A stretch of DNA of 38,873 bases from Chlorokybus atmophyticus (GCA_009103225.1 RHPI01000671.1:510152-549024); one strand, 5' to 3'; positions 7,897 to 29,896 are shown, counted from the stretch's first letter. Numbers and translations: made by a program. Notes: generated by a model from the letters alone, not told the origin.

Positions 7897-10800
7897 TCAT
7901 AAAACCAAGCCCACAGTTAATGGGACAGGACATGAATCCCAATAAGCTCGAAGCAACTCGCGGCAGTGCGTAAGATGCCTGTCGGGCTCCCAACTGTTAT
8001 GTTCCGGGCCATACCCTTTCCATTTCACCAAATAGCGAGTTGCGCGTCCTCGACTATTCAGCTTATGGTTGAATATAGCTTCCACCTCGTATTTGAGCTC
8101 GCTGTCCACCTGAACTAGCGGTGGTGGAGGCTGTGTTCTACCGTCTGAGCGGTAAGGTTTCAACAAGTTTACATGGAACACGTTGTGTATACGCACACTT
8201 GGGGGCAATTGCAGTCGATAAGCGTGCGTACCAATTCTATCAGTGATGGACCTAACCATTGGGGCAACAACTTACGAGCACCCGTACTTTTGGTTATGTT
8301 CTTTGCGTTAAGCAAAACGTGATTGCCGACATTGAAAGTGGCCATTTTTCAATGTGTATCAGCAAAAGCTTTTTGCCTGTCCTGTGCTTCTGACAGACAC
8401 AGCTTGGCTCGAGCCAAATTTTCTTGCATATCAGTGGCAAATTCCTTTGCCGCTGGTACAGTCAGGGCATTGCGAGGTACACGCAATGACGCTGGTGTGT
8501 TCGGGCGAATCCCATAATTTAAGAAAAATGGGGTTTCCTTTACACTTTCCTGCCACGCGTTGTTCACAGCGAACTCTGCCATTCGCAAGTACCTGTCCCA
8601 ATTAGCATGATTAGGAGCCACATAGTCGCGAAGCATTTCTTCCAGTATTTGATTTGCTCGTTCAGTTTAACCGTCCGTTTGCGGGTGGAAAGCAGTCGAC
8701 ATACTTTGTTTTACCCCCAACAATTCACAGACTTCTCGCCAAAACTTGGAGACAAACCGAGGATCACGATCTGTGACAAGTTCACGCGGTACACCGTGAA
8801 CGCGAAAGACCATGGACACAAATAAGTGTGCCGAGTCCCGTGCACTTACAGTTGTGCAACACGGGGCAAAATGCACCATTTTAGTCAAACGGTCGACAAA
8901 AACCACAATAGCAGTGTATTTAGCTGCTGTTTCAGGTAGGTCAGTAGTCAAATCCATACTGACACTATCCCACTTTTGTTCTGGAATTGCCAATGGTTTA
9001 AGCAATCCCGCTTGTTTTTGTCGTAGTGGCTTATTACGTTGACACACGTCACATGTGCGAACATATTGATCCACGTCAGCTAACATTAACGGCCACCAGT
9101 ATAACTGTTGCGCAGATTTGAGTGTTTTGTGTTTCCCCAAATGCCCAGCATACGGCGGGTCATGCACTGAATGTAAGCATTGCTTACGCAAGTCGCCCGA
9201 GTTGGGAATTGCCAACTGCTCCCCTTGATACCACAGATTGCTAACAGCAGTAAGCTGTTGCAAGTTGGTTTGACTGCTAAACCAATCATCTGAGTTATAA
9301 CCTGTGGACACTTCCTTTAAGAAAGGATCTTCAGGCTGTTGTACATTACGTGTACTTCGAGAGCGCGCAAGTGCAAAAAGAGCAGGGCTGCGACTTAGTG
9401 GATCCGCCACATTGGTGCGACCCGGACGGTTTTGCCAAGTGAGAGTGAAACGAGAAATGAATTCATTCCACCTAGCTTGCCGCCTCGACAGATTTTGTTG
9501 CGTATGAAAGAATGTGAGCGGGTTGTGATCAGTAAACACTGAAAACTCCACCCCTTCCAAGTAGCAACGCCATGTGCGCAACGCATGCACCACCCCGAGC
9601 AATTCTTGCTCAGTGGTTGTGTAATTACGTTCAGCAGGAATGAACTTTCTGCTTTCATATGCACATGGTCTGTCATCCTGTAGAAGGACTGCCCCACACC
9701 CAATGGTGGAAGCATCACTGATCACCACAAAAGGCTTGGTGTGGTCGGGGAAGGCTAACACAGGGGCTTGTGTTAATGCATCTTTAATGCGTATAAAAGC
9801 AACCTCGTGTGCCTCCATCCATACAAACTTAACATCTTTTCTTAGTAAAGATGTTAAAGGATTTGCCATGCCAGAATATGCTCGCATGAACTTGCGGAAA
9901 TAATTGGCTAGCCCCAAGAAAGCACGTAACTGATGTACATCCTTGGGTGGTGGCCAATCCTTTACCGCACACACCTTTTGAGGATCTGGTTTCAATCCTT
10001 CTTTACCAATCACATGCCCTAAATAGGGTAGTTCATCCTTTGCAAAGTTGCATTTGGACAGGTTGGCATAGAATTTGTGTTCGCGTAACTTAGCTAGAAC
10101 CAATCCAACATGCCTGTGGTGGTCCTCCCGGGTTTTGCTGAACAAAATAATGTCGTCTAGATATACCAGTACAAACTTGTACAATTCATCAGCAAATACC
10201 GCGTTCATTGCTATCTGAAATGTAGCCGGTGCATTTGTTAACCCAAATGGTAACACTTTATACTCAAAGTGTTTTAGTGGGGTGCGAAATGCAGTTTTTT
10301 GCATATCCGACGGGTGGATTTTGATTTGATGATGACCACTGGTCAAATCCAGCGTGCTGAACACTGTTGCACCTGACATCTTATCAAACAAATCATCAAT
10401 CCGAGGCAAAGGGTATCTGTTTTCCATAGTTACCTTGTTCAACGCACGGTAATCAATACACATGCGTAGCTTGCCATTCTTTTGGGGCACAAGCAAAATT
10501 GGTGCACCTAAAGGAGATATGCTCTTTGTTATTAAACCTTTGTCCAATAACTCTTTGAGCTGTTTTTCCATTTCCGCGTGTTCTAAGGGACTTGGCCTAT
10601 AGATAGGCCGCCAAGGTGGCTTTGCCCCCTCTTCCAACGGAATGGTATGATGTATGTTTCTATCAGGAGGCAACTCCGGGAGTTCATCCTGAAATACATC
10701 TGCATATTGTTCCGTAAGTGATTGCACCACAAGGTCAGCTACGGCCTGTTCAACAGGTGTCTCTACCTGTTGTAAGTGCATCAAATGTACTTCCTCACGT

Positions 10801-11606
10801 TTGCGCACGCAACATTTCAGTTGCATAGGAGAGAGGAGCGGAACATTGTCGCGAGCAACACGTGCGAGTACAGGTGCGATTAACGTCACCTTACGTTTAC
10901 CCTTACGAAGGGTGCACGTATTTGCTCGAGAGTCCAATTGCAAACCTGCTTCGGTGCGCCACTGCTCACCCAAAACAACATCCACCCCGGGGATACTTAT
11001 CTCCACCACGATGAAAGTTGGTCGAGTCTTGTGGGTATTAATAAATAAACGCTCCTTCACCTCCCCAATTGCATTAAGGGTGGAACCGGCAGCACGTACA
11101 TACGACGTGACTAATGTGAAAGGTATGTTATTACGTTTCACCCAAGCATGTTCAACAAAGTTATGGTTTGCACCAGTATCAATCAGTGCTGTACATGGTG
11201 TACCCATAAGTTGACTCTCAAATCTCCATTTGAGTGGCACTGAGTGACCATCAAATGTAGCTAATGTCGGAGTGCCGTGATTGGTAGCAGACTTGATAAA
11301 GATCACTTGCAACGGTGAAGCTCCTGTATCTTTGCGTGTGAGTTGCATGATTACTTCTTCCCCTTTCAACAATCGCGACCACGGGCCATGATATCGAGGG
11401 ATAACTACACATGCAGTGACAGCATGTTGTAATTGCAACTCGTGTAAGTGCTTAACAGCAGTTACTAATTTAGAGAATGGAACATTGATTGAAACACAAC
11501 CGTTTGCATTTGTCAACACAGGTGGTGTGCTCATATCAGTCCATACATCTGATACATCACAAAGAGAGGAAACTTTATTAAGAAGTACAGAGTTTTCAAA
11601 GTCCAC
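7897..11606 (-). pseudogene. pol: Gypsy pol (Dam-like remnant, aspartic protease, RT, RNase H, integrase, chromodomain), disrupted
   Basis: LIDTGA; LRMCIDYR, PFGLTNAP, VYLDDI; SDAS...ELLGVV...FTDH; HDPPYAGHLG...CDVCQ; VDRLTK, TDRDPRF; YEVEAI...YLVKWKGYGPEHNSWEP. In-frame TAA at 8667-8669 in HPQTDG*TER, TGA at 8349-8351, and a frameshift near 8245. Confidence 0.93.
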
Positions 11607-11649
11607 CGGTAATTATGAGACCCCCGAATTTTTGGAAAATCATGGCAAA

Positions 11650-12250
11650 CGCACTGAATATTCGTTGGATTTACCGTTTCAGCTTTTTATCGAGTGAATA
11701 TTCAAGTGTTTTCGTACATTTTGTGCAATCCCTGCCAAAACGAAATCGCGACATTCACCTATAAATCGCGTGAATATCCACACAATAAATCAATGCCACC
11801 TTTCAAAACCCATATACCTCGTATATTCAGTTGAAATCGATTGAATGTTCAAGGCATGCAATTGTGAATGGACACAGCATGTGCTCTGCTAAATATTCAG
11901 CTATACATTGCCTGAACATTCATGAAGGGGCATAAGCTTGTGGCTATATAACAGACAGCTTAAACTCACCAAGTCCCAACTGCCCGTGAATAATCAATTG
12001 ATCAGCTTGTCACACATGTATATTCATAACCTTCATCAGTTTCATGCCACAGATGTGAGTGAACATTCAACACCAATCTGAAACTACGCAATACGATTCA
12101 CACTAAGTCCTAGCTTTGAGTGAATTTTCAACACCATTCCAAAACCAAGCAATACGTTTTGCACTAACTCCTAGCTGTGAGTGAATATTCAACCCCACAC
12201 GAATAAACATATACTCTCATTTTGGCCAAGTCCCGAATGTGATTGAAAAC
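11650..12250. repeat. Subterminal repeat array of the palindromic motif TGAATATTCA, including about 62-bp tandem units
   Basis: Exact copies at 11695 and 12183. Variants at about 11655, 11770, 11842, 11913, 11988, 12060 and 12121. The last three are spaced 61-62 bp apart with shared flanks (gcaatacg...cactaa..cctagct). Confidence 0.85.
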
Positions 12251-12402
12251 CAAGTAGATTGCACTGCTAATTCTAATATACAGTCTAGTATATGTCAAAG
12301 CCAGAGTTGCTCAGCAATTCTACACAGCTGGTTTGAGTTGATGGTGGGGGACAGCTCTGATATGGACTACAGCATTGCTATGCTACACACCACCTGCTAC
12401 TA

Positions 12403-14277
12403 CTAGCTCAACTCATGTCTTTGCTGTGCTAACATACTGTCCATGAGTGTTCGCAATCGTCTTCTCAACCTGTCTGCCACTTGAGGATGAAACCAACTCC
12501 TTTGCATCTGCACACAACCACACAGCAATAACATGTGGTTACTAAGCACGTGTCGGCCTACACGACAGTGCCATTGAAGCACCTTCCACTTGTAAACATT
12601 GCAGTGCACATGCATGAACTGTACCTGTTGAAATATCCGTGCGTTTGGGTCAATTGGACCAGCTTGTACCCCATCTATAAACTTGTCAAGATAAAGCATG
12701 ACAAACAACCCGCACGCAACTCCATCCTTCTGCTGAGGGACCTGCACAAACATGTGTCAATGCTTGCAAACCAAATGCATGTGCATGCATCCAATCAGTG
12801 CTTGTGACAGAATGCATGCAAACTCATCACTAGTGCAATGCAACGTGTGCTACCTGTGGTACAAGAAGCTGTACGTTTTCGGGAGAGAAGCGTCGTTGTG
12901 AGTCACTTCCATGCTTTCTGCCCCACATGTAGTCAAGGTAAGCGCGCATAGGTCCATCAACGTTGCGATGCAGGCCAAGGGAGTCGAGATGGACGAGTAA
13001 AGGCGGCGTGTCACTTCCAAGTTGGCCTCCAGGATTGCACACAAGCAGCAGACTCCAGTGAGTCCTGTGAACAATCAAAATAATTCCAGCTTGCAAATAC
13101 AGCAGCAATTTAGCAAGATATTCTTGGCGCTTATTCTCACCGCGTGTCTGAGTTGACAATCACTCCCAGCAAGTCCTTGGCAAACGGATCACTCTCCCAC
13201 CTGTCTATCCTGTGATTGCTCGTGTGCCAGTCATTTTGTCTATGGCAGCGCACGATCTTGGTGTAGAAATGCGGGTGGAACAGCTTCACCTGAATGCCAT
13301 CTGCTCTGCCTAAGATTTCCTCTTCCTTGTATCTGCATGTGCATCCCACGTACATATGAGATACACGAATAACACAGACGCAACAAATCACATACCTGCA
13401 AAAGAAGTGGAGGATGGTGTCATTGAGCTCTTGTCTGCCATCCAGCAACCTCCTGTCCGTTTCAAGCACTGGCACCGCATCACGTGCACTTGCACTAGGG
13501 TAAATGAACAGTGGCTGCGGTGTTGACGGCTGCGGGTTGCTGACTGGATCGTCCAGCACCATGATATCATCATCGCTGCCCACGAGGTCCACAACTGCCG
13601 CAGACGTCGTGGGTTGCTGATTACAGCCCTCTTCGTCTTCATCGTCAACTTCCATCGTGACTGCCTCTGCAGCCATAAATGGTTCAATTGGGCAAGAACC
13701 ACAACGCAAATCAACAAGCTCAAGTGCACAGCAGCTTACCATTGTTACCCTCATCCCCACTCTCTTCAACGTGTTGAACCCCACTCTGCACAAGTTGTGA
13801 AACCCTACCGCAACTGCCCGGCAGAGAACGACGAGCAAGGCTCTCCCTTGGAGCTGCGCTGGAGCACCACCTTCTTCGTACGCAGCGCATCGCGAGCACG
13901 TAACCTCAACCATGCTACCCACAGCGTGCCGTCGACAGAGGCTGTTTGGACACGTCGCGCAGACTTGCAAAGCTGCTTCGTCGCAGTTCTTCACATGGCA
14001 CCTGTGTTTTGATTCAGTACAAGTGATGATGGTTCTAGGAGTGAAGTTCCTCACAACAAGATGCCAAGCATTTGCTGCAATGAAGTCCACTTACTCATGC
14101 CTTGGGCACTCCCAATATTCATCCTCCACAGGTGGCATAGAGACACAGTGCGCGTGGTAGCTTTTCCAGCAACCTTCCACATCGCAGCCAGATATGGTGC
14201 CCCCATCCTTGCAGACAAAGCAGTAGTCTTCATGTTCCCGATGTTCCAACGCATCCAGCTCCAGTCTCGGTCTCATC
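12403..14277 (-). CDS. NSD-like PHD-C5HCH zinc fingers fused to a Ulp1/SENP (peptidase C48) SUMO-protease domain, spliced
   Basis: HEDYCFVCKDGG..SGCDVEGCWKSYHAHC...WECPRH|ECHVKNC...VCATCPNSLCRRH. Then ELNDTILHFF, LFHPHFYTKI, FAKDLL..VNSDTR|THWSLLLVCNPG, HLDSL, and VPQQKDGVACGLF (His-Asp-Cys triad plus oxyanion Gln). The junctions I checked are in frame. Confidence 0.85.
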
Positions 14278-14333
14278 CTGTGAACAAAGGTTCAGTGGCC
14301 AGGTCTACAGTCTCACAGTAGGGATATGAGGCA

Positions 14334-17300
14334 TCACAATCGCAAACAGTACCTCTTGTACTCAAAATGCCAGTTGCGGCGTGTGGTCCATGACACCTCG
14401 CTCGAGGCGCTATTGGTTTCGCTTTGGGCACCCTGCACCAAGTACACAAGATGGTTGTATGTGATGCCAAAACCCAGGATACATGAGGACATCCAGCTTC
14501 TAATGGACAACGTTGTTAACTCTCCTCTTACCGGAGTGTCCCGGTGCATGCCTCGACGCATGAGACTGCGCCTGTCTTTAACAAGCGCTACTGTTACTTT
14601 GTTCTCATGGGGATCAATTCCCTCAAACCACTGGCCCTTGACCTGCCAGCAAGAAGGGATATTCATCAGCCATTTTCATACTACTATTTCAATTTACTAT
14701 CATCACACCAAGCACACGCCAAAACGATTGCAACACAGCCACTTACCAGGTTGCAATTAAGGTAGGTTTGTTCTGCAAAGCGGGGCTTGTCTTTTCTTAC
14801 GATTGCAAATCCTCCAATGTGCTGGACTTGGTTGCTCATGTACCACCTAGCCTGAGCAGCTGGTGCTCCCGACCAGCTATCACCACAACATCAAAAGATT
14901 GCACCCTGCCATACCAATGGATCTTCTTGGTTGGGTCATCTGAGTCACGCCCAACGGTAAACACGCCACAGTCCATGGTGCGGAGTTTCTTCTCCATTTC
15001 CTCTGCTCTGAACTGACCGATGTCCTTGTAGCGTGCTCTGAAGTATCGCTTGATGTACTTTGGAAAGATTGGACCGCTCAACAGCTCCGTCTCGTGCTTT
15101 GTAAGCTCCCTAACAGGTCCACGCCAGTGATGCAGCTCAGTCATATGCTCCATGTCCTTTGCCACGACATGTCCTTGTTTTTGAGCCCTTTCCCTTGCCA
15201 TCCTGCGTTTGTTCACCTCCCGACTGAACTCTCTGTGTAGCAGCAACCCTTAAATAAATCATACTGTCTGCGCGTTGGACATCACGTACAAAACAGCAAC
15301 TCCCAAAGCAACTTACTCTTTTAACAGCCTGTATTCATCGTCATTCTCAGCCAACCACCACTCGAGCTCCTGCCTTGTCTTACTATCTTTATCCCCAACC
15401 TCAATACGGTGTCTCCGTCCGCAGAGCACATAGTCGTCATCATCTCGTTGCTTGCCCGATCGCAAACTGATGTCGGAGAAAAGTCGCTTCAAGGTGTCCA
15501 TGTAAGTGTTCAGCATGAGCTGGATAGAGTATCTGCAGATGCAACTGGCACTTGAACAAGGCAAACAATGTGGAAAGTTTGCACGTAACTCTCAGTGGGC
15601 TCACACAAAACTTGCCTTTTGCAGATGCTTGCTTCCACATGCTGCCTTGCAAATATCATGCGCTTCACCCACTGCATAAAGCGTTCATGTGCCCACTCCC
15701 AGTGGTCACGCGTCGGACCAAGCCACATGCACTGCTCTGGTAGATGGCCAAGGAGGTGCAGCATCATTGTGAAAGAAGTTCGCGGGAAGAACAGCTCCAC
15801 TTCAGACTGTGCCTCATGCACCAGCACCTGCACTAAGTAATAAGCTATGCATGCCATAGGAGCTGGGCATGCAGAGTAAAGTGTTATTAAAGCCAACCTT
15901 CAATTCTTCGAGGTGTGACTGCTTTACTTCCAATGCAGTCAGCCGTTGGTAGATGTCGCATAGTTTGAAGATGGTTCTCTTCTGATCTTCTCCAATGTCG
16001 TGTGCAGAGCGCAGCACGTACTAAAAAACGACCGACCATAAGTTGTGCTTGTCGTGCGATTTCATCGAGCCTGCATGCTCCATGTCAAAAGTTCCATGCA
16101 TGGAGAATCATTGCTTTAGCGTAAACACAAAACATATAACGGCTATCTCACCTAAATGCTTTGTGAAAGACTGCAGTTTCGAGCCGAAAGTGCTTGAAAC
16201 CCTCACGCCGGAGAGCAATTGCTCAACCAGTCCTACATCTGTGATTGTCCATGGAGCCTGGGGTTTTACCTTGACTGCGACTTCCTTTCCATCCTTCATC
16301 TTCATCTCTGTCTGCAGCACATAGGTTCAAGTCCTTGGTTAAATCCAACTATGGCAGATGTCAACGAGGCCGACTACATACATACCTCTAGCCAGAGTTT
16401 AGGCATGCGGCCTTGCTGCTGCAGATCTTCTCGTGATTCGATGCTGTCGCGCAAGCCAGCTAGGAGATTTGCAAAGTTGGTTGCCAGGTTGGCAAAAATG
16501 TGCATAGGGCCAACCACATGACCTTTGACAGATTTTTGTAACGGTAGCCAATATGGAAGGTCGTGAAAACAGCTCAGTCCAAGGATGCCGGAGGTCTTTA
16601 AAGGATGTCTCTTGGAGTGCAGTGGACGCTTGCTGTTGCGAGATGTCATAGCATACCTGATCACATGGCATCCATTGCTGACATACCTATGTTCTGCAAC
16701 CGAATGCGCAATCAACTGAGATTGCTCACCTGTACACGCTCTCTGCAGTCCGCATGGGTGGTGGTGGTCTGTATTCTGGTTGCGGCCAACGCTCATCAAC
16801 TCTGTAAGGATGGTCATCCGGTAGGTACCGGCGGTGGCCTTGATAGATCACCTTTTTGAGAAGTTCCACATGTTCTCCACTGCACTCGCACTTTGAACAG
16901 CCAAAGATGGCTCCATGCGCCATCTGCAAGGCAGCTTTTGCCAGAGCTGCGCAACCATCATGATGTACTTCAGTAGCCACAACCATGGTTGTGAGGACAG
17001 TCCAATATACAGATATAGTCAGACACTGATAACAGTAAGTGCAAACACTGCTGCTGCTTGAGTACCTGGGTAATCATGGATTACAATCTCCAGAATAGAT
17101 CTGCAACGAAAAACTGCGCCGCGGNCACTGATAACAGTAAGTGCAAACACTGCTGCTGCTTGCGTACCTGGGTAATCATGGATTACAATCTCCAGAATAG
17201 ATCTGCAACGGAAAACTGCGTCGCGGTGGCTGTCATATATGTCTATACCTACAGTAAATGCCAGCAGATTACATGCCTCAGTCATGCGCATTTGTCAAGC

Positions 17301-19520
17301 ATGACTGCAGTAATGGAAGCTGCTTATCCTAGCTGTGTTGAAACCATACCTTCCCAGAGATCTCCCAACTGGTCAATAATTGGCTTGAGATAAGCCTGTA
17401 GATTCTCTGGCTGTTTGGGTCCAGGGATTACAGCAGCTAGAAATGTAGTGTCTGTCTTGTGCATCTTGGCAATGGGCAGGTTCAACACTGAGATTGTGAC
17501 AACCCAAAACTCATAGTTCCCTGCAACTCAACAAACCCTTTGCTGCCATTCGTACAGTTACACTGCAACGAGCATACAGGAAGAAAAATGCTCTTTTATA
17601 CCTTTGTGCGGATCTTTGAACGGCTCATCCCGTCGATGAACATCGCTAGGCGCACATTGCGTGGTTCTTTGGCAAACCGGCTGTAGCGTTGTTCAGTGTC
17701 CTTGAACATTGGCGAGTCTGACAGCAGCAAGTACACCAAGGGCTTACGACCAACTGCCCCAGCCCCACAACACATTCAAACATGCATACAATCGCAAGGC
17801 TGGATACTGAGGTCTTACATACCGCCCCAGCACCTCGCCGACACACAAACAAACACAGGCAAGGACACCGAGGTCTTACATGCCGCCTCAGCGCCACGCC
17901 GACACACAAACAAACACAGGCAAGGACACCGAGGTCTTACATGCCGCCTCAGCGCCACGCACACAAAAGCACAAGGCACGGACACTGAGGGCTTGCATTG
18001 GACTGCCCCAGCCGCTCACCAACACAATCATGCACACAGTCGTGCCTCATTTACCACTGAACTTGGCAATGTTACCGTGTATAGATCGCATAATCCCATC
18101 CTAACTTCGATTTGTGTGCGCCATCATCTCCGCAGCAAGACTAGGTTTTAGGTACAGAGCCCTCAGCGCAGCAGGCACGTCAAAGTAACGCCCATTCTTC
18201 CATGCAACTTGTCTACCTCCTATGTTGCGGTAGCGAGGGGCCTTGCAGACTGCATAAGCAAGTCGTATGCTGATGGGACATGCTAATCAAATCCCATTGT
18301 AGTGAACATTTGCAACAATTGCTCACCTTTGCAAAGTATCCTGTTGGCATGTCGGCCACAATACAACATGTGATCACAGCGACAGGCATCATATGTGTGG
18401 AAGCCCATGTTGAGGCCTTCAAGGCATTTCAATAGCTCGTGCATGCTGCCTGGCATCTTATTCTCCTTAGGCAAGAGGATGCCACGCAACAACCTGGCAC
18501 ACAGAAACACATCAGTTCTGAACAGGCTGATGTTTCAGCAGTCAGCAGTGTAATTTGCCCACCAACCTGAGCAGTTTATTCCTGAAATTGAAGGGTATTC
18601 GATGTAGCTGCGCCAGAACCAATAGCAGCATGGAAATGCTTAGAGGGGTTGTACGAGAGCCGAAAACAACAGGGTTGCTTGCATTATCCAGCAACGCAGC
18701 ATTCACCTTGTCAAGTAGCATGGCATCATCAACGCATTTAGCCTCGTCTGGCTGCGATTCCACATCGGTTTCATAGTCTTGGTCTTCGCCGGCAACATCA
18801 CCTTGCTCCGCATCACCTTGCTCCGCATCGACTTGCTCAGCAGTGGAGGTGCAGTGCACTGGCGTCTCAGGCTCTACTTGTCCATTTGTGGATTTGGTTC
18901 TGGCACCTTGATGCTCTTGCAATGTAGCATTCTCAATTCCACAAAATGCTGGGTGAGATCCGCGTTGTTCTCCATAAGCACATTGTCCTTCATGAGCACA
19001 CGGATTACAACCTGCCAGCTGCAATGAGTCTAGTGGCACATGAACAATGAGAGGCACAGCATCAGCAATGTCAACATGCCACGCAAGTCAGGTCGTACCT
19101 GCTGGTTGCAAGTTGGCTGCAACATTGAAAGGAGATTCAACACTCGGTTGCAACGGCGTGCCTGTGTCAACATGTTCAGTAGCGTCGTTCCCAACTAGCA
19201 ATCGTTCGGTATCATGGAGAGCTTCACCTGGGGCAAGCCAGATCAATGATCAGACAGCCTGTTGTATAGATTTACAGATGTAGAGAAGTTGCTCTTGTAC
19301 CTGACGACATGTGTAAGGATGCAGCAGCAACAGCAGCATCAGCTTCTTCAAGTTCATGGGGTTGTAGTCGATCACGGTATTCAGGAGCAACAGCTTCTGG
19401 AGTGCCACACCACATGTTTTTGCCAAAGTTTTCATGATATTCAGCCCTTCTAATGTGGTTGTGTGTGAACACTTTGCTCCCTTTGCAGTCGCGGCAAAAA
19501 CACCTGCGAAAGTAGCTCAT
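14334..19520 (-). pseudogene. CACTA/En-Spm transposase (Transpos_assoc, Tnp2/Transposase_21, DUF4218, DUF4216), many exons, damaged
   Basis: CFCRDC N-terminus; LPKENKMPGS..DACRCDHMLY; FAKEPRNVRLAMFIDG; VLNLP...VIPGPKQP.NL.AYLKP; HDYPA; GHRRYLPDDHPYR; LPYW..H..GPMH; MKSHD; FFPRTSF.MMLHL..HL...GP...W.W..ERF; WYGRV. In-frame TAG at 18101-18103 and 16021-16023, and an apparent 1-bp deletion near 17622 (DGM-PF motif). C-terminal end uncertain. Confidence 0.9.
17735..18020. repeat. Intronic tandem repeat of about 61 bp within the transposase
   Basis: gacacacaaacaaacacaggcaaggacaccgaggtcttacatgccgcctcagcgccacg at 17840 and 17901, with degenerate flanking copies. Confidence 0.9.
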
Positions 19521-19810
19521 GCTACAAACATCAAAAGCAGTCAGCCAACATACTGCAAGCAACTTCCAATCAACTTCCATACAGCCAAAGCAAAGACCTG
19601 CAGGCACGCTGCCGCCGCTGACACCGCCGCCGTCGCCACCGTCATGCCTGCCTACCGTAAATTAAGGGTTTAGGACACATCCAATCCCGATTCAAAACAA
19701 GCCAGAAAGTCAATCCGGATATGCTCCACAATTTGCGTACATGCTCCTTTTCTTCTTCCGTCCAGTGCATTAGCTTCTAGGGTTTGTGTGCCAGGTAGCG
19801 TGGCGCCAGC
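19521..19810. promoter_or_regulatory. Probable bidirectional promoter between the transposase (-) and the methyltransferase (+)
   Basis: ATGs at 19520 (-) and 19811 (+) diverge. Telo-box-like AGGGTTTAGG at 19665-19674 and TAGGGTTT at 19778-19785. Function is inferred. Confidence 0.55.
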
Positions 19811-21554
19811 ATGCGCGGCGTCAAAGTGTGTAGCTTCTGCAAAGCATACTTGGTTAGGAATGGCAACAACAGACGTCTGCAACAGCATGAAGAGAAGTGC
19901 AAGCTGTACAGTGAGCAGTATGGCTTCTATGAAGCCTGCTGGCACCACAAGGCAAGGGGGGACAATGTGAGGCAATGCAGACTGCTGGCACAATGCATGA
20001 GGCCAGATTTCTTTTGGGAGGAGTGCACTTGCCTGCAGTGCTCGCTTTCCAAGTTTGAGTGGGACGGCGAGCCCATGAATCACCTGCCTTGGGCACGGCC
20101 TGGAGCATATCGCGATGGGCAGATGTGCAATGTGGTTCGACGTCAGCTCGTGCGCAACGGTCGCGGCAAGTCCACTGTAATCGAAGACGATGTCAACAAC
20201 AGGGTGAGTTGAACTGTCCTTGCAAACAGCAAAACAGCGCTTGCACGCATGACCAACTTACTCTGAATGTCAAAGGGGAACGCGGTTGTCGACGATGTCG
20301 CGACACTGGCTGCTTGGCGGTTGTCGAGTTGAACTGTCCTTGCAAACAGCAAAACAGCGCTTGCATGCATGACCAACTTACTCTTGAATGCCAAAGGGGA
20401 ACGCGGTTGTCGACGATGTCGCGACACTGGCTGCTTGGCGGAAGGAGATTGTTGATGAGGGGCAGTCTTTGGTAGCATGCCGCGTTGTGGTGTACTGGCC
20501 AGGAATGAGCTCCTGGTATGCAGGCCACATCATCACTTTTGATGCCAACACAGGTATACTGCAGAGTATTTACATGCGCTCATGCAAGCACCGGCTCAGG
20601 CAAACATGTGGCTCAGGAAAACATACCATCAAGTACGACGATTTCGTTGAGGACCCACGGCTGCACCACATCTTGATAAAGAACTGGAACATGGCAGCTG
20701 TGCGTGAGGGTTACGACGTAATGGTTCGTGTTGGTGGTCAAAGCTGTCTGAAACTGCAAGACTTGCCTGGTCGAGAGCTCGATCGATGGCCCAAGCCCCC
20801 ACCCCTTCTGATCACACGCACACCAATAGACTCAAACGGAAGACGTTGCAGGCCGCGCGCACTGGATCTCTTTTGCGGCGCTGGTGGTGTAGCCATGGGT
20901 CTGTACAGGGCAGGGTTTGATGTTGAGGGCATCGACAACAAGCCACAACCGTCATACCCATTCAAGTTCTGCCAGATGGATGCAATGGACGCTGACCCGA
21001 CAGCATACGCTGCGGTGTGGGCAAGTCCTCCATGTCAAGCTCTAAGTGGGGCCATTCCCACTACACAGCGCTCCGCGTACGGCAATCGATGGGAGCACGT
21101 CAACCTGATTGACCCCATAAGAGCCAAGTTGCAGTTGAGCGGCAAGCCATGGGTGATAGAGAATGTCGCAGGCGCATCAGGACACATGACAACTCACCTG
21201 AAGCTGTGTGGCACCATGTTCAAGTTGGATGTGTATCGTCATCGCATCTTCGAGACAAACCCTCCACTGCACTCAGACTTGAAATGCAACCACACTGGTT
21301 GTGCACTTGGAGAGCTGGCCACCCACCCGGAGCAGCGCCGGCAGTTGCTACCTGGGGAGAGGCAAATTTACCCGGTGTACGGCCAAGCATCCTGCCGTGG
21401 CACGATTGCAGGGTGGCAGTCTGCCATGCAGGTGGAGTGGATGGATGCGGAATCGGAAGTCAAGAATGCCATTCCACCAACTTACTCTGAACATGTAGGC
21501 AGGCTGTTGCTGGAAGCAATAGGCTTCACTGTTGATTACCCTCCTTTTTACTGA
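19811..21554 (+). CDS. Cys/His-rich N-terminus + Tudor domain + C5 cytosine DNA methyltransferase (short phage/bacterial type)
   Basis: Exons 19811-20203, 20397-20553 and 20617-21554 are in frame. Tudor: LVACRVVVYWPGMSSWYAGHIITFDANTG|KHTIKYDD. MTase motifs: ALDLFCGAGG (I), WASPPCQ (IV), WVIENV (VI), LCGTMF..YRHRIFE (VIII), AMQVEWM..KNAIPPTYSEHVG (IX-X). No internal stops. Confidence 0.9.
20206..20441 (+). repeat. About 120-bp tandem duplication of the intron 1 3' part and exon 2 start of the methyltransferase gene
   Basis: gagttgaactgtcc...ctgcttggcgg at 20206 and 20326, with about 3 differences. Confidence 0.92.
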
Positions 21555-21742
21555 AAGGTAGAGGTAGCTCTTGATTGCTGGCCACTTTGTTAGCCTGAAC
21601 TCAAACCCAACAACAGAATGAGCGACCCAATAAAGTCAGCAAGAGGTCTTAATCACGAGGATGCCTCTGTTTGCCAGCACGGGAAAGACTGACCTGCTGG
21701 GCAGGGTCTCTTTCAGAGCACCTTCATGCCCTGTTGCGCCGT

Positions 21743-21950
21743 CCGCCCACCCGAGACTAGACCTCCTGCGGGTTCACTGCGAACGCAGGGTATGGTCCAA
21801 CCAAAGCTGACTCGCGAAAGTCATGAACCAGAGGCTCTAAGCATGTGCACAAAGTCTACAGTACGTGACTTGCGCGAGACGGCTCTGCAGGACCACATCC
21901 TGCGTTCGCAGTAAACCCGTAGGAGGTTTTGTGTCGGGTGGGTGGGCGGA
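21743..21950. repeat. About 200-bp imperfect foldback (inverted repeat)
   Basis: The reverse complement of 21743-21789 matches 21899-21945 (cctgcgttcgcagt.aacccg.aggaggt...tcgggtggg). Inner pairs tggtcc/ggacca and ctcgcgaaagtca/tgacttgcgcgag. Centre near gtgcac at about 21845. Confidence 0.8.
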
Positions 21951-23072
21951 GAAGGAGAACTTCTAAGTTGCTGTGCGCATGCCTTTGGTTGCGTGCAATC
22001 TTTGGACACATGCCCGTTTCAGCGGTTGCTGGGGCCAGTACGAGGGCGTGCCAGTACGAGGGCGGCATGTCAACAGCAGCAAGAGGTGTTCTCTCGGGTG
22101 GGTGGGGGGAGAAGGACTGCCAGCCTGAGTTGCCATATCACAAACAGCAACCCAACCCCAGCGGCAGGTACAACCGCCGTCCATCCAAAAGCCCTGGAGC
22201 AGATCGCGACCAACAAGTTCCATGCAGAGGCTGGAGGTGGTTGAGAAGGTGAAATGCAATCACAGTTAGTATATGCACGAGAGCGATGCATACCTCATGA
22301 CTTACTGCGGACTTCTGTTACCACCTCCACTCTACAAGTGCTGTCACACTTACCTGTGCGCCGTGACTGCATACAAACAGCAGCCAGCAAGGCTCCCAAG
22401 GCGGTGCGTTCGCAGTGAACCCGCGTGCAGTCGGGATGATCCTAAGCATACAAGGACAGGCAGATGTGGGTGATTGCATTTTGCTGCAATCCTTCAACAC
22501 ACACAGACAGGCAGCTAAAGCTAACACACTCTATCCTGTACAAAGACCACGAGATTGTCTTTCCTCTATCCTGTCATGTCAAGCTCCTGTCATGTCACCT
22601 GGAAGAACACCTCCACTTCCTGCTGGTTAGCAGCGAAAGCAGGTGGCACAGGCAAGAAGGGGGCAAGAAAGTGAGCAAGAAGGGGGCTTAATCACAGGGT
22701 GATGCCCCTACGCTCTGCATACAAAGACAGAATGAGCAAGCAGAGGGCTTATTCACGAGGATGCCTCTGCATTCAGCATGAGCTCAGACCCGAATCGGGA
22801 ATGAGAAAACAGAGGGCTAAATCTAGAAGATGCCTCTGTGTTCAGCTTGAATTAATATATACACTTACACATGAGGTTGGCCCTACGCTGCGAGAACGAT
22901 AGATTCTGCACAGGCATGGTGAGGTAGCAGAGGCTCCTGCAAACACAACAGCAGCAGATGTTAACGAGAGCAATACTTGCAACTTTTGCTATTGTACAAG
23001 CAGTGTCCATGCGTGTTCCAACCTGCAAAGCTGGTAGTCGTGAAGTGAACAACCTCGAGGTTGCTGTCACAG

Positions 23073-26000
23073 CTACCTCTGCTGCTGCGGCTGCTGTTGC
23101 TGCTGTGTTTCCTCATGCTCCCGCCGCTGCTTTCGCTGCTCCTTTCCCTGCTGAGCCATTCGCTTTATCTGTTGGCGCTTCTCCTCCTTCTTCCGCTTCA
23201 GCTGCTTACGCAGCTGCTCCTGCTGCTCAAGGGTCTCCTGTGCAGCTATCATCTCCTGCTCACGCTGATATGCAGCTTGATGTGCCAGCTTCTTGCCCTC
23301 CCGACGACTGCTGATTTGTTCCAGTCGTTCCAATTTCTGCAACCTGCTTGGCCTTGCTTTGCCGAACTCAAACTTTGAACGATCTAGGAGGTGTGCTTGC
23401 TGTTTAACAAGCAAGGTCCGTTCATAAGTCTTGGCAGCCGACACAAGCAAATCGAACTGATCAGCATTCCAATCTTGGTTGCAAGGACCCTTGGGCACGC
23501 CAATGCGCACTACTTTCCTGAGTCCCTGGAGAAACAGTTGTAGTTCAAGGGCCTTAGGCACCAGCTCAACGCAGGTGTTTGCCACCCCGCACAATTGTGC
23601 AAACTGCGCGTGATATTCGTCCACGGTGCGCTCCCCCTGTTGCACACGATGCAGCTTCTAGAAAGCACCGGAAGGCGTGTTGTCCCTTTGCAAAGCAGCT
23701 CGCTGTTGGCGGCGTGACGGGCGGCGTCTGCGTTTCTTGGGGTCACTGGTGTTACTGGTTGCTGCGGTGCTGATGTCAATTGACATATCACTGATAGCAT
23801 CAGCCTCCTCCTCAACAGCGACATCAACCTGCATAGCGCCAGCCTCCTGCTGGCTCCTGGCCTCAGCCTCCTGCCTTTGCTGGTCTTTAGCCTCGTTGGC
23901 CTTAGCCTCGGCCTCCTGCCTCTGCTTGGCCTCGGCCTCCTCCTGCTTGGCCTTAGCATTGGCCTCATCCTGCTTGGCCTTGGCCTCCTCCTGCTGCTGC
24001 TTGGCCTCGGCCTCCAGCCTCTGCTTGGCCTTGGCATTGGCCTCATCCTGCTTGGCCTTGGCCTCCGCCTCCTGCCTCTGCTTGGCCTCGGCCTCCTCCT
24101 GCCGCTGCTTGGCATTGTCCTCATCCAGCTTGGCCTTGGCCTCCGCCTCCTGCCGCTGCTTGGCCTCCTGCTTGGCCTCCTGCTTGGCCTGCTTGGCCTC
24201 GGCATCAGCTTGCTACTTGGGCTGGGGCTCGGCTTGCTGCTTGGGCTGGGGCTGGGGCTGCGGCTCGGGCTGGGGCTGGGCTTGCTGCTGGGGCTGGGGC
24301 TGGAGCTGGGGCTCGGCTTGCTGCTTGGGCTGGGGCTGGGGCTGCGGCTCGGGCTGGGGCTGGGCTTGCTGCTGGGGCTGGGGCTGGAGCTGGGGCTGGG
24401 CTTGCTGCTTGGGCTGGGGCTGGGGCTGCGGCTCGGGCTGGGGCTGGGCTTGCTGCTGGGGCTGGGGCTGGGGCTCGGCATCTGCAGGGTACATGCAGCG
24501 CAGGACTTCTGGTGGCATGTCGCTGCGCTGCCAAGAGAGTATACCATTTGCATCACCAACAGACATGTAATGCGCGCTGGGCTTGCTTGGATCCGTGTTG
24601 CCAATGATTATATGGCCAGCCACATCGATAACATCCTCGCCAATCACCACTACAGGTTTGACGGAATGCTTCTCTCCCTTGGCATCCACTGTGTAGTACC
24701 TCCCGTCATCGCCTTCGATGAGGCCGCCCTTGTGCTCTGCTTCCCAGCAGTACTGCTTCTCGTCGGCAACCTCAGTGAGCTGCACAGTACCGATGTGAAT
24801 GCCAAGAGCGTGCGCCATGATCGCCACTTGCAGTTGATCGGCATAAACGCTCTCTTCAGCGATCACTTTCTGCAGAGCCTCTACAGCGTTGTCTTCATCT
24901 TGCTTAGTCTTGAGTTGCTTTTTGTTAAGTGCCCTGGTTACGCCATATTTCCTGGCCATCTTTTTGTAATCCTAGCCCATGTCACCACAGGCCCCGTAGT
25001 TGCGATACTCCAGCAACCAATAAAGGTTGACCTGCTCAGCACAGATCTTCCGAAGCTTTTGCGCTTGCTCTCTTGTTGGCAGCTGTTTGCCATTGTCCAG
25101 CACAATGCTTCGCCAGAAAGACCCGTTGTCCGCTGCGTTCGCGCGTGTCAAGCACGCAGCGTTCACGCGAGGGCGCGACTGGGCAAGGCAGGCATAGAAG
25201 CAATTCCCATCTGCATAGGCATCGAAAAGCCGAAGCCGGTGTTTATCATGCAACAGCCCAACCAGCTCTAACTCGCCCTCCGTTTCTGCTGGAGGTAGAC
25301 CGTCTTCTGGTTCAACAGCAGAAGCAGAGGTACCGGCTTCAGGTCGAGGCCCTTCCTGCATTTGTGCAGTCTGGGACTTGCGTGGGGCCTCAGCTTTCTG
25401 CTGGGCCTCCGCGTCGGCTTGCTGCTTGGCCTCAGCATCCGCTTGCTGCTTGGCCTCCGCGTCAGCTTGCTGCTTGGCTTGGGCCTCCACTTGCTGCTTG
25501 GGCGCCTCTGTTTCGTAGTCAAGACCGTATTCCCCGATGTCGATGCCCATAGCAGCTGCCTCTGGATCACATAGCCTTAGCTCTTCCTCCACATACTGCC
25601 GTAGCTTGAGCCTCCATTCTCGATTGAGGGAAGCCAAGTCTGGTTTGCGCAGCGCTTTCTTGATAAAGACCACCAGCTCACCCCATGACATGAGGTTCTT
25701 GCTCTTCGCCTTCGCTTTCCTCCAGTCAGAGAATTTCTTTCCCCACTTTGTCTTCGTTTCTTCATGGATGTCATTATCGGTAACAACATCTTCAAGGCCA
25801 AAATGCCCGAGGTCCATACCCCTAGCAGCTGCCTCCGGATCACAAAGCCTGAGCTGGTCCTCCACGAACTTCCGTAGGCAGATCTGCAAGTTCTTGTCGA
25901 GCTCAAGCAAGCGAGGATCTTCATTCAGGTTCTTCTGCATTACTTCAACCACGACATCCCAACTGTATTCTGTGGACATCTTCGCCTTCCCAGCCTTCTC

Positions 26001-26353
26001 CTCCTCCCTTAGTTTCCGCCAATTATTGAACCCCTCCAGCAACTGAGCCTTTGTGGTGTCAAAAAGGTCTGCAATAGACAGTGTTATTGCAACAATGGTG
26101 GCAAACAACCGCAGTGAGCATGCGTTAGTATGGTCAGCTGGAACAGCGCTACATTACTTGATTTCTTGCAGGGTTTCTGCAGGACAGCTTCCTTCTTAGC
26201 AGGTTCCTTCTTGTGCGCTGGACCCTTGTGCTTCTTGTCTGTGTGCATGACCAGTGTTACCACATGTTAACAATAATCATGCTGAACAAGCATACATTAC
26301 TTATTACCTGCAGGCTTAAACTGGCCAAGGGGAACGAGCTTTCGCTTGGACAT
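23073..26353 (-). pseudogene. Large protein: duplicated unknown domain + OTU-like cysteine protease + PQ/AKQ repeats + Gag-like capsid segment; three in-frame TAGs
   Basis: Two short 5' exons (MSKRKLVPLGQFKPA|DKKHK...) splice to a single frame of about 3 kb, broken only by TAG at 24972, 24213 and 23658. OTU motifs: DAYADGNCFYACLAQ, YADQLQVAIMAHALGIHI, HYMSV. Gag-like: QQGERTVDEYHAQFAQL...LFLQGLR. Confidence 0.75.
23850..24480 (-). repeat. Coding repeats: 72-bp PQ-rich units (24213-24480) and AKQ/EAEAK coiled-coil units (23850-24210)
   Basis: QPQQQAQPQPEPQPQPQPKQQA repeated three times; EAKQRQEAEAKAKQDEANA-type repeats. Confidence 0.9.
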
Positions 26354-26500
26354 GATGAACGACCTGAGGAAAGCCTCACAGCCAAAAACAAGCACACATA
26401 GTTGAGCAACATGAGCATGCACACACACACACGGCTGCCTATTTGAGCATGCAGACAAGCCTGAGCATGCACACTTTAGCCTCAGCCACAATGAAAACTA

Positions 26501-28693
26501 TAAAACAGCTTGAAAACTGAGCAAGAGGTGGTCTTACGCACGAGGCCGCCCCTCTGGTTAGCATCAAGTGGTGGCTAACAAGAGTGCATGCTCAAATAAA
26601 ACAGCTTGAAAACTGAGCAAGAGGTGGTCTTACGCACGAGGCCGCCCCTCTGGTTAGCATCAAGTGGTGGCTAACAAGAGTGCATGCTCAAATAAAACAG
26701 CTTGAAAACTGAGCAAGAGGTGGTCTTACGCACGAGGCCGCCCCTCTGGTTAGCATCAAGTGGTGGCTAACAAGAGTGCATGCTCAAATAAAACAGCTTG
26801 AAAACTGAGCAAGAGGTGGTCTTACGCACGAGGCCGCCCCTCTGGTTAGCATCAAGTGGTGGCTAACAAGAGTGCATGCTCAAATAAAACAGCTTGAAAA
26901 CTGAGCAAGAGGTGGTCTTACGCACGAGGCCGCCCCTCTGGTTAGCATCAAGTGGTGGCTAACAAGAGTGCATGCTCAAATAAAACAGCTTGAAAACTGA
27001 GCAAGAGGTGGTCTTACGCACGAGGCCGCCCCTCTGGTTAGCATCAAGTGGTGGCTAACAAGAGTGCATGCTCAAATAAAACAGCTTGAAAACTGAGCAA
27101 GAGGTGGTCTTACGCACGAGGCCGCCCCTCTGGTTAGCATCAAGTGGTGGCTAACAAGAGTGCATGCTCAAATAAAACAGCTTGAAAACTGAGCAAGAGG
27201 TGGTCTTACGCACGAGGCCGCCCCTCTGGTTAGCATCAAGTGGTGGCTAACAAGAGTGCATGCTCAAATAAAACAGCTTGAAAACTGAGCAAGAGGTGGT
27301 CTTACGCACGAGGCCGCCCCTCTGGTTAGCATCAAGTGGTGGCTAACAAGAGTGCATGCTCAAATAAAACAGCTTGAAAACTGAGCAAGAGGTGGTCTTA
27401 CGCACGAGGCCGCCCCTCTGGTTAGCATCAAGTGGTGGCTAACAAGAGTGCATGCTCAAATAAAACAGCTTGAAAACTGAGCAAGAGGTGGTCTTACGCA
27501 CGAGGCCGCCCCTCTGGTTAGCATCAAGTGGTGGCTAACAAGAGTGCATGCTCAAATAAAACAGCTTGAAAACTGAGCAAGAGGTGGTCTTACGCACGAG
27601 GCCGCCCCTCTGGTTAGCATCAAGTGGTGGCTAACAAGAGTGCATGCTCAAATAAAACAGCTTGAAAACTGAGCAAGAGGTGGTCTTACGCACGAGGCCG
27701 CCCCTCTGGTTAGCATCAAGTGGTGGCTAACAAGAGTGCATGCTCAAATAAAACAGCTTGAAAACTGAGCAAGAGGTGGTCTTACGCACGAGGCCGCCCC
27801 TCTGGTTAGCATCAAGTGGTGGCTAACAAGAGTGCATGCTCAAATAAAACAGCTTGAAAACTGAGCAAGAGGTGGTCTTACGCACGAGGCCGCCCCTCTG
27901 GTTAGCATCAAGTGGTGGCTAACAAGAGTGCATGCTCAAATAAAACAGCTTGAAAACTGAGCAAGAGGTGGTCTTACGCACGAGGCCGCCCCTCTGGTTA
28001 GCATCAAGTGGTGGCTAACAAGAGTGCATGCTCAAATAAAACAGCTTGAAAACTGAGCAAGAGGTGGTCTTACGCACGAGGCCGCCCCTCTGGTTAGCAT
28101 CAAGTGGTGGCTAACAAGAGTGCATGCTCAAATAAAACAGCTTGAAAACTGAGCAAGAGGTGGTCTTACGCACGAGGCCGCCCCTCTGGTTAGCATCAAG
28201 TGGTGGCTAACAAGAGTGCATGCTCAAATAAAACAGCTTGAAAACTGAGCAAGAGGTGGTCTTACGCACGAGGCCGCCCCTCTGGTTAGCATCAAGTGGT
28301 GGCTAACAAGAGTGCATGCTCAAATAAAACAGCTTGAAAACTGAGCAAGAGGTGGTCTTACGCACGAGGCCGCCCCTCTGGTTAGCATCAAGTGGTGGCT
28401 AACAAGAGTGCATGCTCAAATAAAACAGCTTAAAAACTGAGCAAGAGGTGGTCTTACGCACGAGGCCGCCCCTCTGGTTAGTATCAAGTGGTGGCTAACA
28501 AGAGTGCATGCTCAAATAAAACAGCTTAAAAACTGAGCAAGAGGTGGTCTTACGCACGAGGCCGCCCCTCTGGTTAGCATCAAGTGGTGGCTAACAAGAG
28601 TGCATGCTCAAATAAAACAGCTTAAAAACTGAGCAAGAGGTGGTCTTACGCACGAGGCCGCCCCTCTGGTTAGCATTAAGTGGTGGCTAACAA
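26501..28693. repeat. 96-bp tandem satellite, about 22.8 copies, nearly homogeneous
   Basis: Unit taaaacagcttgaaaactgagcaagaggtggtcttacgcacgaggccgcccctctggttagcatcaagtggtggctaacaagagtgcatgctcaaa. The 480-bp (5-unit) line periodicity is visible. Variants occur only in the last three units. Confidence 0.98.
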
Positions 28694-29001: not shown

Positions 29002-29086
29002 AAACCCTAAGCAAATCAGTAATGGTCCATCAGTGATGGGCTATCACCTTTGACGCCATAGCCGGCATCCCTAACCCTAACCCTAA
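29002..29086. promoter_or_regulatory. Telo-box and short interstitial telomeric repeats
   Basis: AAACCCTAA at 29002-29010 and (CCCTAA)3 at 29069-29086. Another TAACCCTAACCCTAACC lies at 29710-29726. Confidence 0.6.
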
Positions 29087-29334
29087 TGTTTTTGTAAGTT
29101 GTTGTAGTTTGCAAGGTTGGTGGCGGGGAGGTTGTTGTGGTCGGCGGCGAGGTTGTCTTGGTCGGCCGCGGCAGCGTCTTTAGTTATAAAGGTTGTGGGC
29201 GGCGTGGTCGGTGGCGAGGTGCTTGAGGTTGGCGGCGACGGCGGCAGCCATCCTTGGTTGATGCAGAGCTACTTAGGCAGATACGTGCAAGCCTGCCTGC
29301 ATGCATGTTTTGTTTGTGCGCGTGCGTGTGTGTA

Positions 29335-29660
29335 TGTGTGCTGGTCATTCACTGGGGCGGCATGTAAGCCCTCAGTGTCCTGCCTTGTGGTTTCCGTTAT
29401 TTGCATGTGTTGGTGATTCACTGGGGCGGCATGTAAGCCCTCAGTGACCTGCCTTGTGGTTTTGTTTCTGTGATTCTGTTGGTGATTCACTAGGGCGGTC
29501 TGTAAGATCTCAGTGACCTGCCTTGTTTTTGTGTTTCTGTGCATGTGTGCTGGTGAGTCGCTGGGGCGGTCTGTAAGACCTCAGTGTCCTGCCTTGTGGT
29601 TTTTCTGTGAATGTGTTGGTGAGGAGCTGGGACGGTCTGTAAGACCTCAGACGGGCCCTG
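29335..29660. repeat. Five degenerate tandem units of 66-71 bp
   Basis: Core ctggggcgg..tgtaag.cctcagtg.cctgccttgt at about 29351, 29420, 29489, 29560 and 29626. Confidence 0.9.
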
Positions 29661-29896
29661 TGGTGTGGACTGGGTGAATGTTTTTGTGACTCTGTTTCGC
29701 CATATGTTATAACCCTAACCCTAACCGCCCGGACATGTTGTTGTAGGTTGTGGCCGGGAGGCGGCGAGGTTGCCGTGGTTGGCGGCGAAGTCTTTGAGGT
29801 CGGTGGCGACGGCGCCAGCGATCTTGAGTTCCTAGCAAGAAACTCAGGCAGATATGTCGCATGCAGATTTTAGTCAAGGTCGGCGGCGGCGGCGCC

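Follow-up and report, generated by a model that had tools for sequence, protein, structure and literature searches.

A multi-copy CACTA/EnSpm-type family that probably carries a C5 DNA methyltransferase gene in the alga Chlorokybus atmophyticus

A 38,873-nucleotide stretch of Chlorokybus atmophyticus DNA (GCA_009103225.1 RHPI01000671.1:510152-549024; hereafter the window, with positions counted from its first letter) contains a TNP2/CACTA-type transposase gene lying head-to-head with a spliced gene for a C5 DNA methyltransferase. We conclude that this stretch is probably one copy of a multi-copy CACTA/EnSpm-type family that carries the methyltransferase, a copy that is partly decayed and lacks a boundary on its right side. 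The window as a whole is eukaryotic and repeat-rich, with a GC content of about 50%. The genes on which this reading is built are listed below.

12403-14291, minus strand: PHD(NSD-type)-C5HCH-Ulp1 (SUMO-protease-like) exons, located downstream of the transposase and sharing its strand (Pfam)
14687-19661, minus strand: multi-exon TNP2/CACTA-type transposase gene (Pfam, colinear exons)
15510-15896, minus strand: DUF4218 (Pfam, E 1.3e-10)
16726-16986, minus strand: transposase exon, Transposase_21 profile positions 138-207 (E 1.2e-6)
17127-17294, minus strand: transposase exon, Transposase_21 profile positions 103-137 (E 3.5e-3)
17327-17527, minus strand: transposase exon, Transposase_21 profile positions 48-109 (E 1.5e-10, 41.1 bits against a cutoff of 28.6)
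17599-17775, minus strand: transposase exon, Transposase_21 profile positions 8-40 (E 6.7e-5)
18104-19661, minus strand: N-terminal Cys-rich and tnp2-N-like transposase exons, the 5' part of the transposase gene
19811-21554, plus strand: three-exon gene encoding a C5 DNA methyltransferase preceded by a Cys-rich N-terminus and a Tudor-like domain (GT-AG borders)
19811-20203, plus strand: predicted methyltransferase exon 1, Cys-rich 131-aa N-terminus
20397-20553, plus strand: predicted methyltransferase exon 2, which forms the Tudor-like barrel with the start of exon 3
20554-20616, plus strand: predicted methyltransferase intron 2, 63 nt, splitting the Tudor-like domain
20617-21554, plus strand: predicted methyltransferase exon 3, the rest of the gene
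23073-26353, minus strand: OTU-like gene (ATG at 26353, short first exon; long frame 26108-23073)

Transposase, protease, and methyltransferase genes

The catalytic core of the transposase looks complete at the level of profile matches, because four colinear exons on the minus strand (17775-16726) together cover positions 8-207 of the 213 in the Transposase_21 profile, with DUF4218 following downstream. A search of a representative library with a transposase exon returned only 13 weak, short matches, leaving the gene model without a full-length reference. Within the gene, a 102-bp tandem duplication (17024-17226) with a single N at its centre spans an exon-intron junction, and may be an assembly artefact.

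Downstream of the transposase, the segment 14094-14291 matches PHD_NSD at 29.1 bits (cutoff 23.9) and zf-HC5HC2H at 30 bits (cutoff 29.1), both above the curated cutoff. Directly downstream of PHD_NSD, at the N-terminus of 13137-14090, lies a C5HCH match of 22.4 bits, which is below its cutoff of 26.3. Peptidase_C48 is represented by two colinear pieces, 12830-13159 and 12403-12753 (E 4.9e-3 and 3.7e-3; profile positions 86-136 and 161-188), each sub-threshold when the Ulp1 exons are scored as separate pieces rather than as one joined query. The C48 triad can nevertheless be read in the open reading frames (ORFs), with His in HWSL, Asp in LDSL, and Cys in DGVACG. An earlier note on this DNA, made from the sequence alone, had claimed a PHD-C5HCH/Ulp1 gene next to a CACTA transposase, and the PHD_NSD, C48, Transposase_21, and DUF4218 matches place both genes where it put them.

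The methyltransferase gene is arranged head-to-head with the transposase gene. The two ATGs are only ~170-230 bp apart, and a divergent upstream region of ~200 bp is common to both. Searches with the catalytic domain recover 2658 homologues, mostly proteins of ~220 aa at ~44% identity, and the gene matches phrog_363, annotated as 'DNA methyltransferase', at E 9e-27. Its Pfam score of 20.8 bits is below the cutoff of 22, and an NCBIfam search with the methyltransferase domain gave zero matches. In a 34-sequence alignment, the enzyme keeps all 26 of the 26 invariant positions, with FCGAGG in motif I, SPPC216 in the catalytic motif IV, ENV258-260 in motif VI, and RHR284-286 in motif VIII. An alignment-based AlphaFold (AF2) model has a predicted local distance difference test (pLDDT) score of ~90 over the methyltransferase domain; it was used in place of a single-sequence AF2 prediction of the ORF, which at a pLDDT of 31 was unusable. 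When this model was submitted to Foldseek, only C5 DNA methyltransferases were returned at probability 1.0 (M.HaeIII, DNMT3A/B, DNMT2, and M.HhaI). Conserved motifs and predicted fold both indicate that the gene at 19811-21554 encodes an apparently intact C5 methyltransferase.

Read contigs carry four extra bases within the predicted intron 2, which fits this intron being non-coding; an exact-sequence look-up of the methyltransferase ORF found no record, and the ORF would be broken by the same +4 nt. At intron 1, a 116-bp tandem duplication (20206-20441) takes in the intron and the beginning of exon 2. The extra junction copies in this duplication and in the 102-bp duplication of the transposase gene could be skipped by splicing.

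The region encoded by exon 2 and the start of exon 3 matches three Tudor Pfam families at E 0.035-0.08, below cutoff. A language-model comparison gives it a score of 0.81, with 9 of the 10 best matches in one family or clan, mostly Tudor-type, and its AF2 pLDDT is <50. On these matches, the Tudor assignment is weakly supported. Of the divergently paired Tudor-C5-MTase gene described in the earlier note, the C5 methyltransferase and the head-to-head layout are recovered, with the Tudor part left as a tentative label that we word here as Tudor-like.

In a maximum-likelihood tree, the window methyltransferase falls into a four-member clade (support 98/89) with P0007, P0001, and P0002. The contig bearing P0007 is probably that of a giant virus, because it encodes both an RNA polymerase Rpb1 and a DNA polymerase B along its 245 kb. 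In P0001 (L003) and P0002 (L004), the variable region between the catalytic motifs accommodates an inserted methyl-CpG-binding domain, which combines writer and reader in one compact protein; P0001, on a contig that is short and densely packed, also has a gene for a 2OG-Fe(II) oxygenase as its neighbour. Two members of the wider methyltransferase family were checked for context, and both are in phage-like contigs. A scan of viral contigs gave three distant matches on such contigs at 38-46% identity, and metagenome scans with the methyltransferase and with one transposase exon found zero relatives. In our overall reading of the locus, which taken as a whole we consider somewhat favoured, the catalytic domain descends from a phage-type orphan methyltransferase family by way of a clade that includes the gene on the giant-virus contig.

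Further downstream and facing the methyltransferase gene, the long frame of the OTU-like gene (26108-23073) extends over ~1000 codons and, apart from the in-frame stops described below, is continuous, without a frameshift. From the N-terminus, where a domain is duplicated, the encoded sequence continues through a coiled-coil and the OTU-like domain (~24500-25240) to PQ-rich repeats and a gag-like tail; the C-terminal part has a weak Retrotrans_gag match (E 0.0086). Both OTU boxes can be read in the domain (Cys box DGNCFY, His box HY), and its score in the Atlas (language-model) search is 0.90, with OTU clusters accounting for 81 of the 100 matches. Similarity to the nairovirus vOTU is weak (E 0.12); the OTU-like pieces have no OTU Pfam match, and homology searches with both halves of the domain gave zero matches.

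Copies elsewhere in the genome and repeats across the window

Public read contigs of two studies were compared with window positions 17500-23400 at ≥80% identity. They comprise near-identical contigs, which correspond to the locus itself, and diverged variants at 80-95% identity. At position 18582 in the transposase gene, up to six distinct contigs are present, and within a single run the transposase exon occurs in at least 5-6 different versions. Variant contigs also cover methyltransferase exon 1 (20078-20203). Over 20614-21125, in the part of exon 3 that encodes the linker and methyltransferase domain, a variant of ~88% identity has 18 nt inserted in the exon without loss of frame, and another variant contig has a 16-nt change in the predicted intron 2. 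The transposase and methyltransferase genes are both multi-copy, and at least one other copy of the methyltransferase keeps its frame. The methyltransferase is hence not a single-copy host gene, a status that the earlier note had singled out for checking, because its exons have diverged paralogues in the read contigs of both studies, as do the transposase exons.

The window and the read contigs of both studies differ by small indels at 17621 (+G), 18530 (-7), 20576 (+CGCA), and 22015 (+G), together with ~0.6% substitutions. Either the assembly derives from another strain or it contains errors; because of these differences, single stops and frameshifts in the window need to be read with caution.

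Repeats inside the region and the elements flanking it are as follows.

11655-12191, no strand assigned: candidate left subterminal array, made up of 11 TGAATATTCA palindromes (motif count)
17768-18038, plus strand: array A, a 61-bp minisatellite with the GAGGTCTTAC motif, inside a transposase intron (tandem repeats)
21642-22838, plus strand: non-coding spacer (~1.5 kb) after the methyltransferase, with the hairpin motif at 21642, 22742, and 22811 (self-comparison)
26500-28693, plus strand: satellite of 96 bp x 22.9, each unit with the hairpin variant GTGGTCTTAC (units 99-100% identical)
29327-29692, minus strand: array B, 69-bp repeats, an inverted relative of array A at 68-74% identity (self-comparison)
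8667-11606, minus strand: flanking Ty3/Gypsy pol fragment with protease, reverse transcriptase (RT), RNase H, and integrase (Pfam)
29897-34801, minus strand: young Ty1/Copia element (Pfam and self-comparison)

On the left, TGAATATTCA occurs 11 times within 11655-12191 and once elsewhere in the window when at most one mismatch is allowed, against an expectation of ~1.0; a total of 12 was reached in none of 100 shuffles. Part of the array is a tandem repeat (61 bp x 2.4, 12054-12197), and at the array's edge lies CACTG at position 11652, a putative candidate terminus. The PHD-Ulp1 end of the transposase gene is ~750 bp away from the array at 11.65-12.19 kb.

A second, hairpin-forming motif of the GAGGTCTTAC type has 33 matches in the window compared with 1.6 expected. 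These are located in the transposase intron (17.8 kb), in the spacer (21.6 and 22.7-22.8 kb), in every satellite unit (26.5-28.7 kb), and, inverted, in array B (29.3-29.7 kb). Judging from this distribution, the motif would loosely tie the region together out to 29.7 kb. The earlier note's array next to the PHD-Ulp1 gene, which is of subterminal type but one-sided, and its shared internal repeats, here spanning 17.8-29.7 kb, are both recovered by these counts. The 96-bp satellite apparently grew from the hairpin motif of the transposase intron and spacer, and the near-identity of its units suggests a very recent expansion.

Arrays A and B were considered as the two ends of an element and rejected in this role: array A sits in a transposase intron, and a paralogous contig of ~83% identity over 17607-18503 has only 77 nt where the window has the 342-nt stretch of array A. 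Array B is flanked by telomere-like interstitial runs of CCCTAA (TTAGGG-type) at ~29070-29087 and 29713-29728. Each run heads a partly duplicated unit of ~640 bp with GGCGGCGAGGTTG repeats, the first of which contains the 69-bp array. In the spacer downstream of the methyltransferase, a 211-bp palindrome (21739-21949) has 60-nt arms that are 85% complementary, and part of the arm, GTTCACTGCGAACGCA, recurs at 22404-22423. This palindrome could represent an insert resembling a miniature inverted-repeat transposable element or a structured terminator.

The Gypsy fragment to the left has Pfam matches (RVT_1 2e-36, RT_RNaseH 2e-33, Integrase_H2C2 2e-20, and rve). It is without gag, and self-BLAST found no pair of long terminal repeats (LTRs) for it within the window; its open frame stops at ~11612, directly before the TGAATATTCA array. 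To the right, the Copia element has an intact gag-pol ORF of 1323 aa (gag-protease-integrase-RT), LTRs of ~425 bp that are 98% identical, and a 5-bp target-site duplication (TSD), GCGCC. Its insertion site is a GGCGGCG-rich repeat. The Copia element may still be active; it is either nested inside the transposon or a marker of sequence beyond it.

Elsewhere in the window, a 66-nt poly-C run (642-707) and a 47-nt poly-G run (1196-1242) flank an assembly gap of 524 N (1243-1766), and all three are probably assembly artefacts. At the other extreme, a plus-strand frame at 38066-38873 is open for ~270 codons with two stops and runs past the window end; neither Pfam nor the Atlas assigns it to a family. 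A Harbinger-type transposase remnant at 38.0-38.9 kb, an idea prompted by an LHNF-like motif, was dropped when it found no backing from Pfam or Atlas. An Rfam scan of the whole window gave zero matches.

One mobile unit or separate neighbours

We think it fairly probable that the transposase, the PHD-Ulp1 exons, and the methyltransferase form one family-level mobile unit, and we regard the case for including the OTU-like gene in that unit as evenly balanced. A number of observations weigh against this picture. Brute-force pairing of all CACT[AG] and [CT]AGTG motifs in the window yielded no convincing terminal inverted repeat pair and no TSD, and a sensitive search across the window found nothing that matches the left 650 bp (11600-12250) in inverted orientation. 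The TGAATATTCA palindrome forms no cluster on the right side of the window, so that the array is one-sided. The young Copia, the 2.2-kb satellite, and the Gypsy fragment interrupt or border the region. Over 21834-23400, a range that takes in the spacer and the OTU-like gene's 3' end, each run contributes a single contig and no paralogue at ≥80% identity was seen. The variant contigs are too short for any one of them to span both genes and so establish a physical link in another copy. Metagenome and viral collections yielded no relatives of the transposase-methyltransferase pair. The Tudor and OTU assignments, finally, fall below curated thresholds.

To these can be added the condition of the OTU-like frame, which contains three in-frame TAG stops (24972-24974, 24213-24215, and 23658-23660), one of them within the OTU-like domain. 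Unless the stops are assembly errors, the gene in the present copy is best read as a pseudogene. One TAG stands where the neighbouring KQQA repeats predict Q, which would fit a C-to-T change, for example from CAG or CAA to a stop. At the place of the earlier note's OTU gene there is thus an OTU-like gene, weakly supported as OTU by its readable boxes and Atlas score, which is interrupted by stops and has no Pfam match or homologues in the searches made.

Because the window shows neither common termini nor a TSD, and the left array is unpartnered, the existence of one element is something that we infer; the common termini envisaged by the earlier note did not emerge, with no CACTA-type inverted repeat pair in the window. 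One candidate end (~11652) lies inside the window. The right end may fall outside it, and we place this terminus, by inference, at or beyond the window end.

The lack of termini enclosing the methyltransferase/OTU block could also be explained by a mosaic repeat island, in which the CACTA element consists of the transposase, PHD, and Ulp1 parts only. The remaining components (methyltransferase gene, OTU-like gene, satellite, and arrays) would then have arisen separately, for example as an endogenised viral gene family or as other repeats, and have gathered in one region rich in transposable elements without being mobilised by the transposase. The accumulation of Gypsy, Copia, and satellite sequences would be consistent with such a repeat sink, as would the missing ≥80% paralogue over 21.8-23.4 kb and the ancestry of the methyltransferase in a viral clade. 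Several features are harder to reconcile with it, however: the methyltransferase exons resemble those of the transposase in being multi-copy and show a frame-preserving change, the divergent ATGs are very close together, and the hairpin motif occurs in the transposase intron as well as on both sides of the methyltransferase-OTU block. We rate the mosaic island as a minority possibility that deserves to be kept in view. Considerably less plausible to us is a domesticated host locus, where transposase-derived and chromatin-enzyme genes serve the host, are immobile, and have paralogues that constitute an ordinary gene family. An apparently intact methyltransferase with conserved catalytic residues, a paralogue that keeps its reading frame, and the failure to find termini would be expected of such a locus; the many transposase exon variants (at least 5-6 in one run), the subterminal-type array beside the gene's 3' end, the decayed OTU-like gene, and the setting nested among other transposable elements would not.

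A further question is whether the methyltransferase and OTU genes, if they are true cargo, have any role, or whether they are neutral passengers comparable to Pack-type captured fragments. The broken OTU-like gene in the present copy is what such passengers would look like. The methyltransferase, in contrast, retains every invariant position and clean GT-AG introns, its ~10%-diverged paralogue keeps the exon frame while the predicted intron takes a non-triplet change, and its catalytic domain comes joined to a reader-like domain, unlike a raw captured fragment. We therefore hold neutral carriage to be improbable, and return to a mobile unit of transposase, PHD-Ulp1, and methyltransferase as the reading that we prefer.

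For such a unit, the following sequence of events can be proposed. The transposase gene would run on into the PHD(NSD-type)-C5HCH-Ulp1 exons, and the transposase-methyltransferase pair, probably with the OTU-like gene and the motif-bearing repeats to at least 29.7 kb, would transpose as one unit. The Tudor-like reader could recruit the methyltransferase to methyl-lysine chromatin, where the enzyme would write 5-methylcytosine (5mC) on the element's own or nearby DNA and so tune element expression and access of the transposase. The Ulp1 and OTU proteases might meanwhile strip SUMO and ubiquitin from silencing factors. An anti-silencing or self-marking function of this kind is speculation, and an active epigenetic role of the element's enzymes seems to us possible at a rather low level of confidence.

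Related systems and significance

Plant CACTA and Mutator elements carry Ulp1 (C48) domains downstream of or fused to the transposase, and OTU proteases are found in various DNA transposons. The position of the Ulp1-like protease downstream of the transposase in the window conforms to this arrangement; the window differs from those elements in the NSD-type PHD-C5HCH reader ahead of the protease and in the methyltransferase gene alongside. CACTA (Spm) elements are also the textbook example of element-encoded proteins that interact with the methylation of the element itself.

The closest parallel in layout is Sola1-1_Ec32 of Ectocarpus, a giant 21.5-kb DNA transposon family in which a prokaryote-type accessory gene, encoding a ParB-like domain plus an N4-cytosine/N6-adenine methyltransferase, runs in the opposite direction to the transposase; its product has been proposed to bind and epigenetically mark its own element (PMC12477816). 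That paper cites green and red algal DNA transposons with similar methyltransferase genes, and it describes a Tudor-bearing Gypsy element as the first transposable element reported with a Tudor domain (PMC12477816). The probable transposon in the window shares with Sola1-1_Ec32 the setting of an algal DNA transposon (~20 kb in that case) with a methyltransferase opposite to the transposase strand. It differs in having a C5 enzyme fused to Tudor-like and Cys-rich domains in place of ParB and N4/N6 activity, and a CACTA/TNP2 transposase in place of Sola1.

C5 DNA methyltransferases (DNMTs) are known from the retrotransposons SymbioLINE-Dnmt, SymbioDIRS-Dnmt3, and Klebsormidium LTR-Dnmt3, for which self-methylation has been proposed (PMC5890265). 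Here, too, a C5 methyltransferase with intact motifs would be carried by a mobile element. In those retrotransposons, however, the DNMT is part of a polyprotein or ORF1 and mostly of the Dnmt3 type, whereas the window gene is separate, spliced, of phage/giant-virus type, and next to a DNA transposase. Fungal EnSpm, Plavaka, Kyakuja-Dileera-Zisupton, and other DNA transposons carry TET/JBP dioxygenases, and their complete copies have 5'-CAC..GTG-3' termini and 3-bp TSDs (PMC12730594). These provide a precedent for an EnSpm-related element with an accessory enzyme acting on cytosine methylation, with the difference that TET/JBP enzymes erase or oxidise 5mC in elements of known termini, and the window enzyme is a writer for which no termini were found.

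Fusion of a reader to a C5 methyltransferase is also seen in DNMT3 (PWWP-ADD-methyltransferase) and in the PWWP-bearing ChloroDNMTs of green algae (PMC12344493). As in these proteins, the window gene would join a Royal-family histone reader to a compact C5 methyltransferase whose target-recognition region is small. It is not a member of either group by sequence, given its phage-type catalytic domain of ~220 aa, a domain that is Tudor-like rather than PWWP, and its multi-copy occurrence beside a transposase.

The earlier note had regarded the combination of a methyltransferase, two reader types, and both proteases in one CACTA element as undescribed. We found no description of a C5 methyltransferase in a CACTA element in the literature, in a coverage that is incomplete and so does not amount to proof. 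The novelty claim of the note is nevertheless weakened by the published methyltransferase-bearing algal DNA transposons (PMC12477816), retrotransposon DNMTs (PMC5890265), and EnSpm elements with TET/JBP (PMC12730594).

Transposons that encode DNA-methylation enzymes indicate that epigenetic marks are contested by both sides and are not only imposed by the host. Following the C5 enzymes of retrotransposons, the N4/N6 enzymes of algal elements, and the TET/JBP enzymes of fungal elements, a C5 writer with a histone reader beside a CACTA transposase would be the case still missing from the series, and the methyltransferase itself would provide a compact, naturally targeted enzyme that is open to testing. 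In its fullest form, which we put forward tentatively and consider rather unlikely, the proposal is that an early-diverging green-lineage alga has a giant CACTA family in which selection has preserved a full set of chromatin tools in several copies. This would consist of a giant-virus-derived 5mC writer directed by a Tudor reader, a PHD-C5HCH reader linked to a SUMO protease, and an OTU deubiquitinase, by which the family would write its own methylation and disarm SUMO- and ubiquitin-based silencing. If this were true, no cut-and-paste transposon with a 5mC writer of its own would have been known before it.

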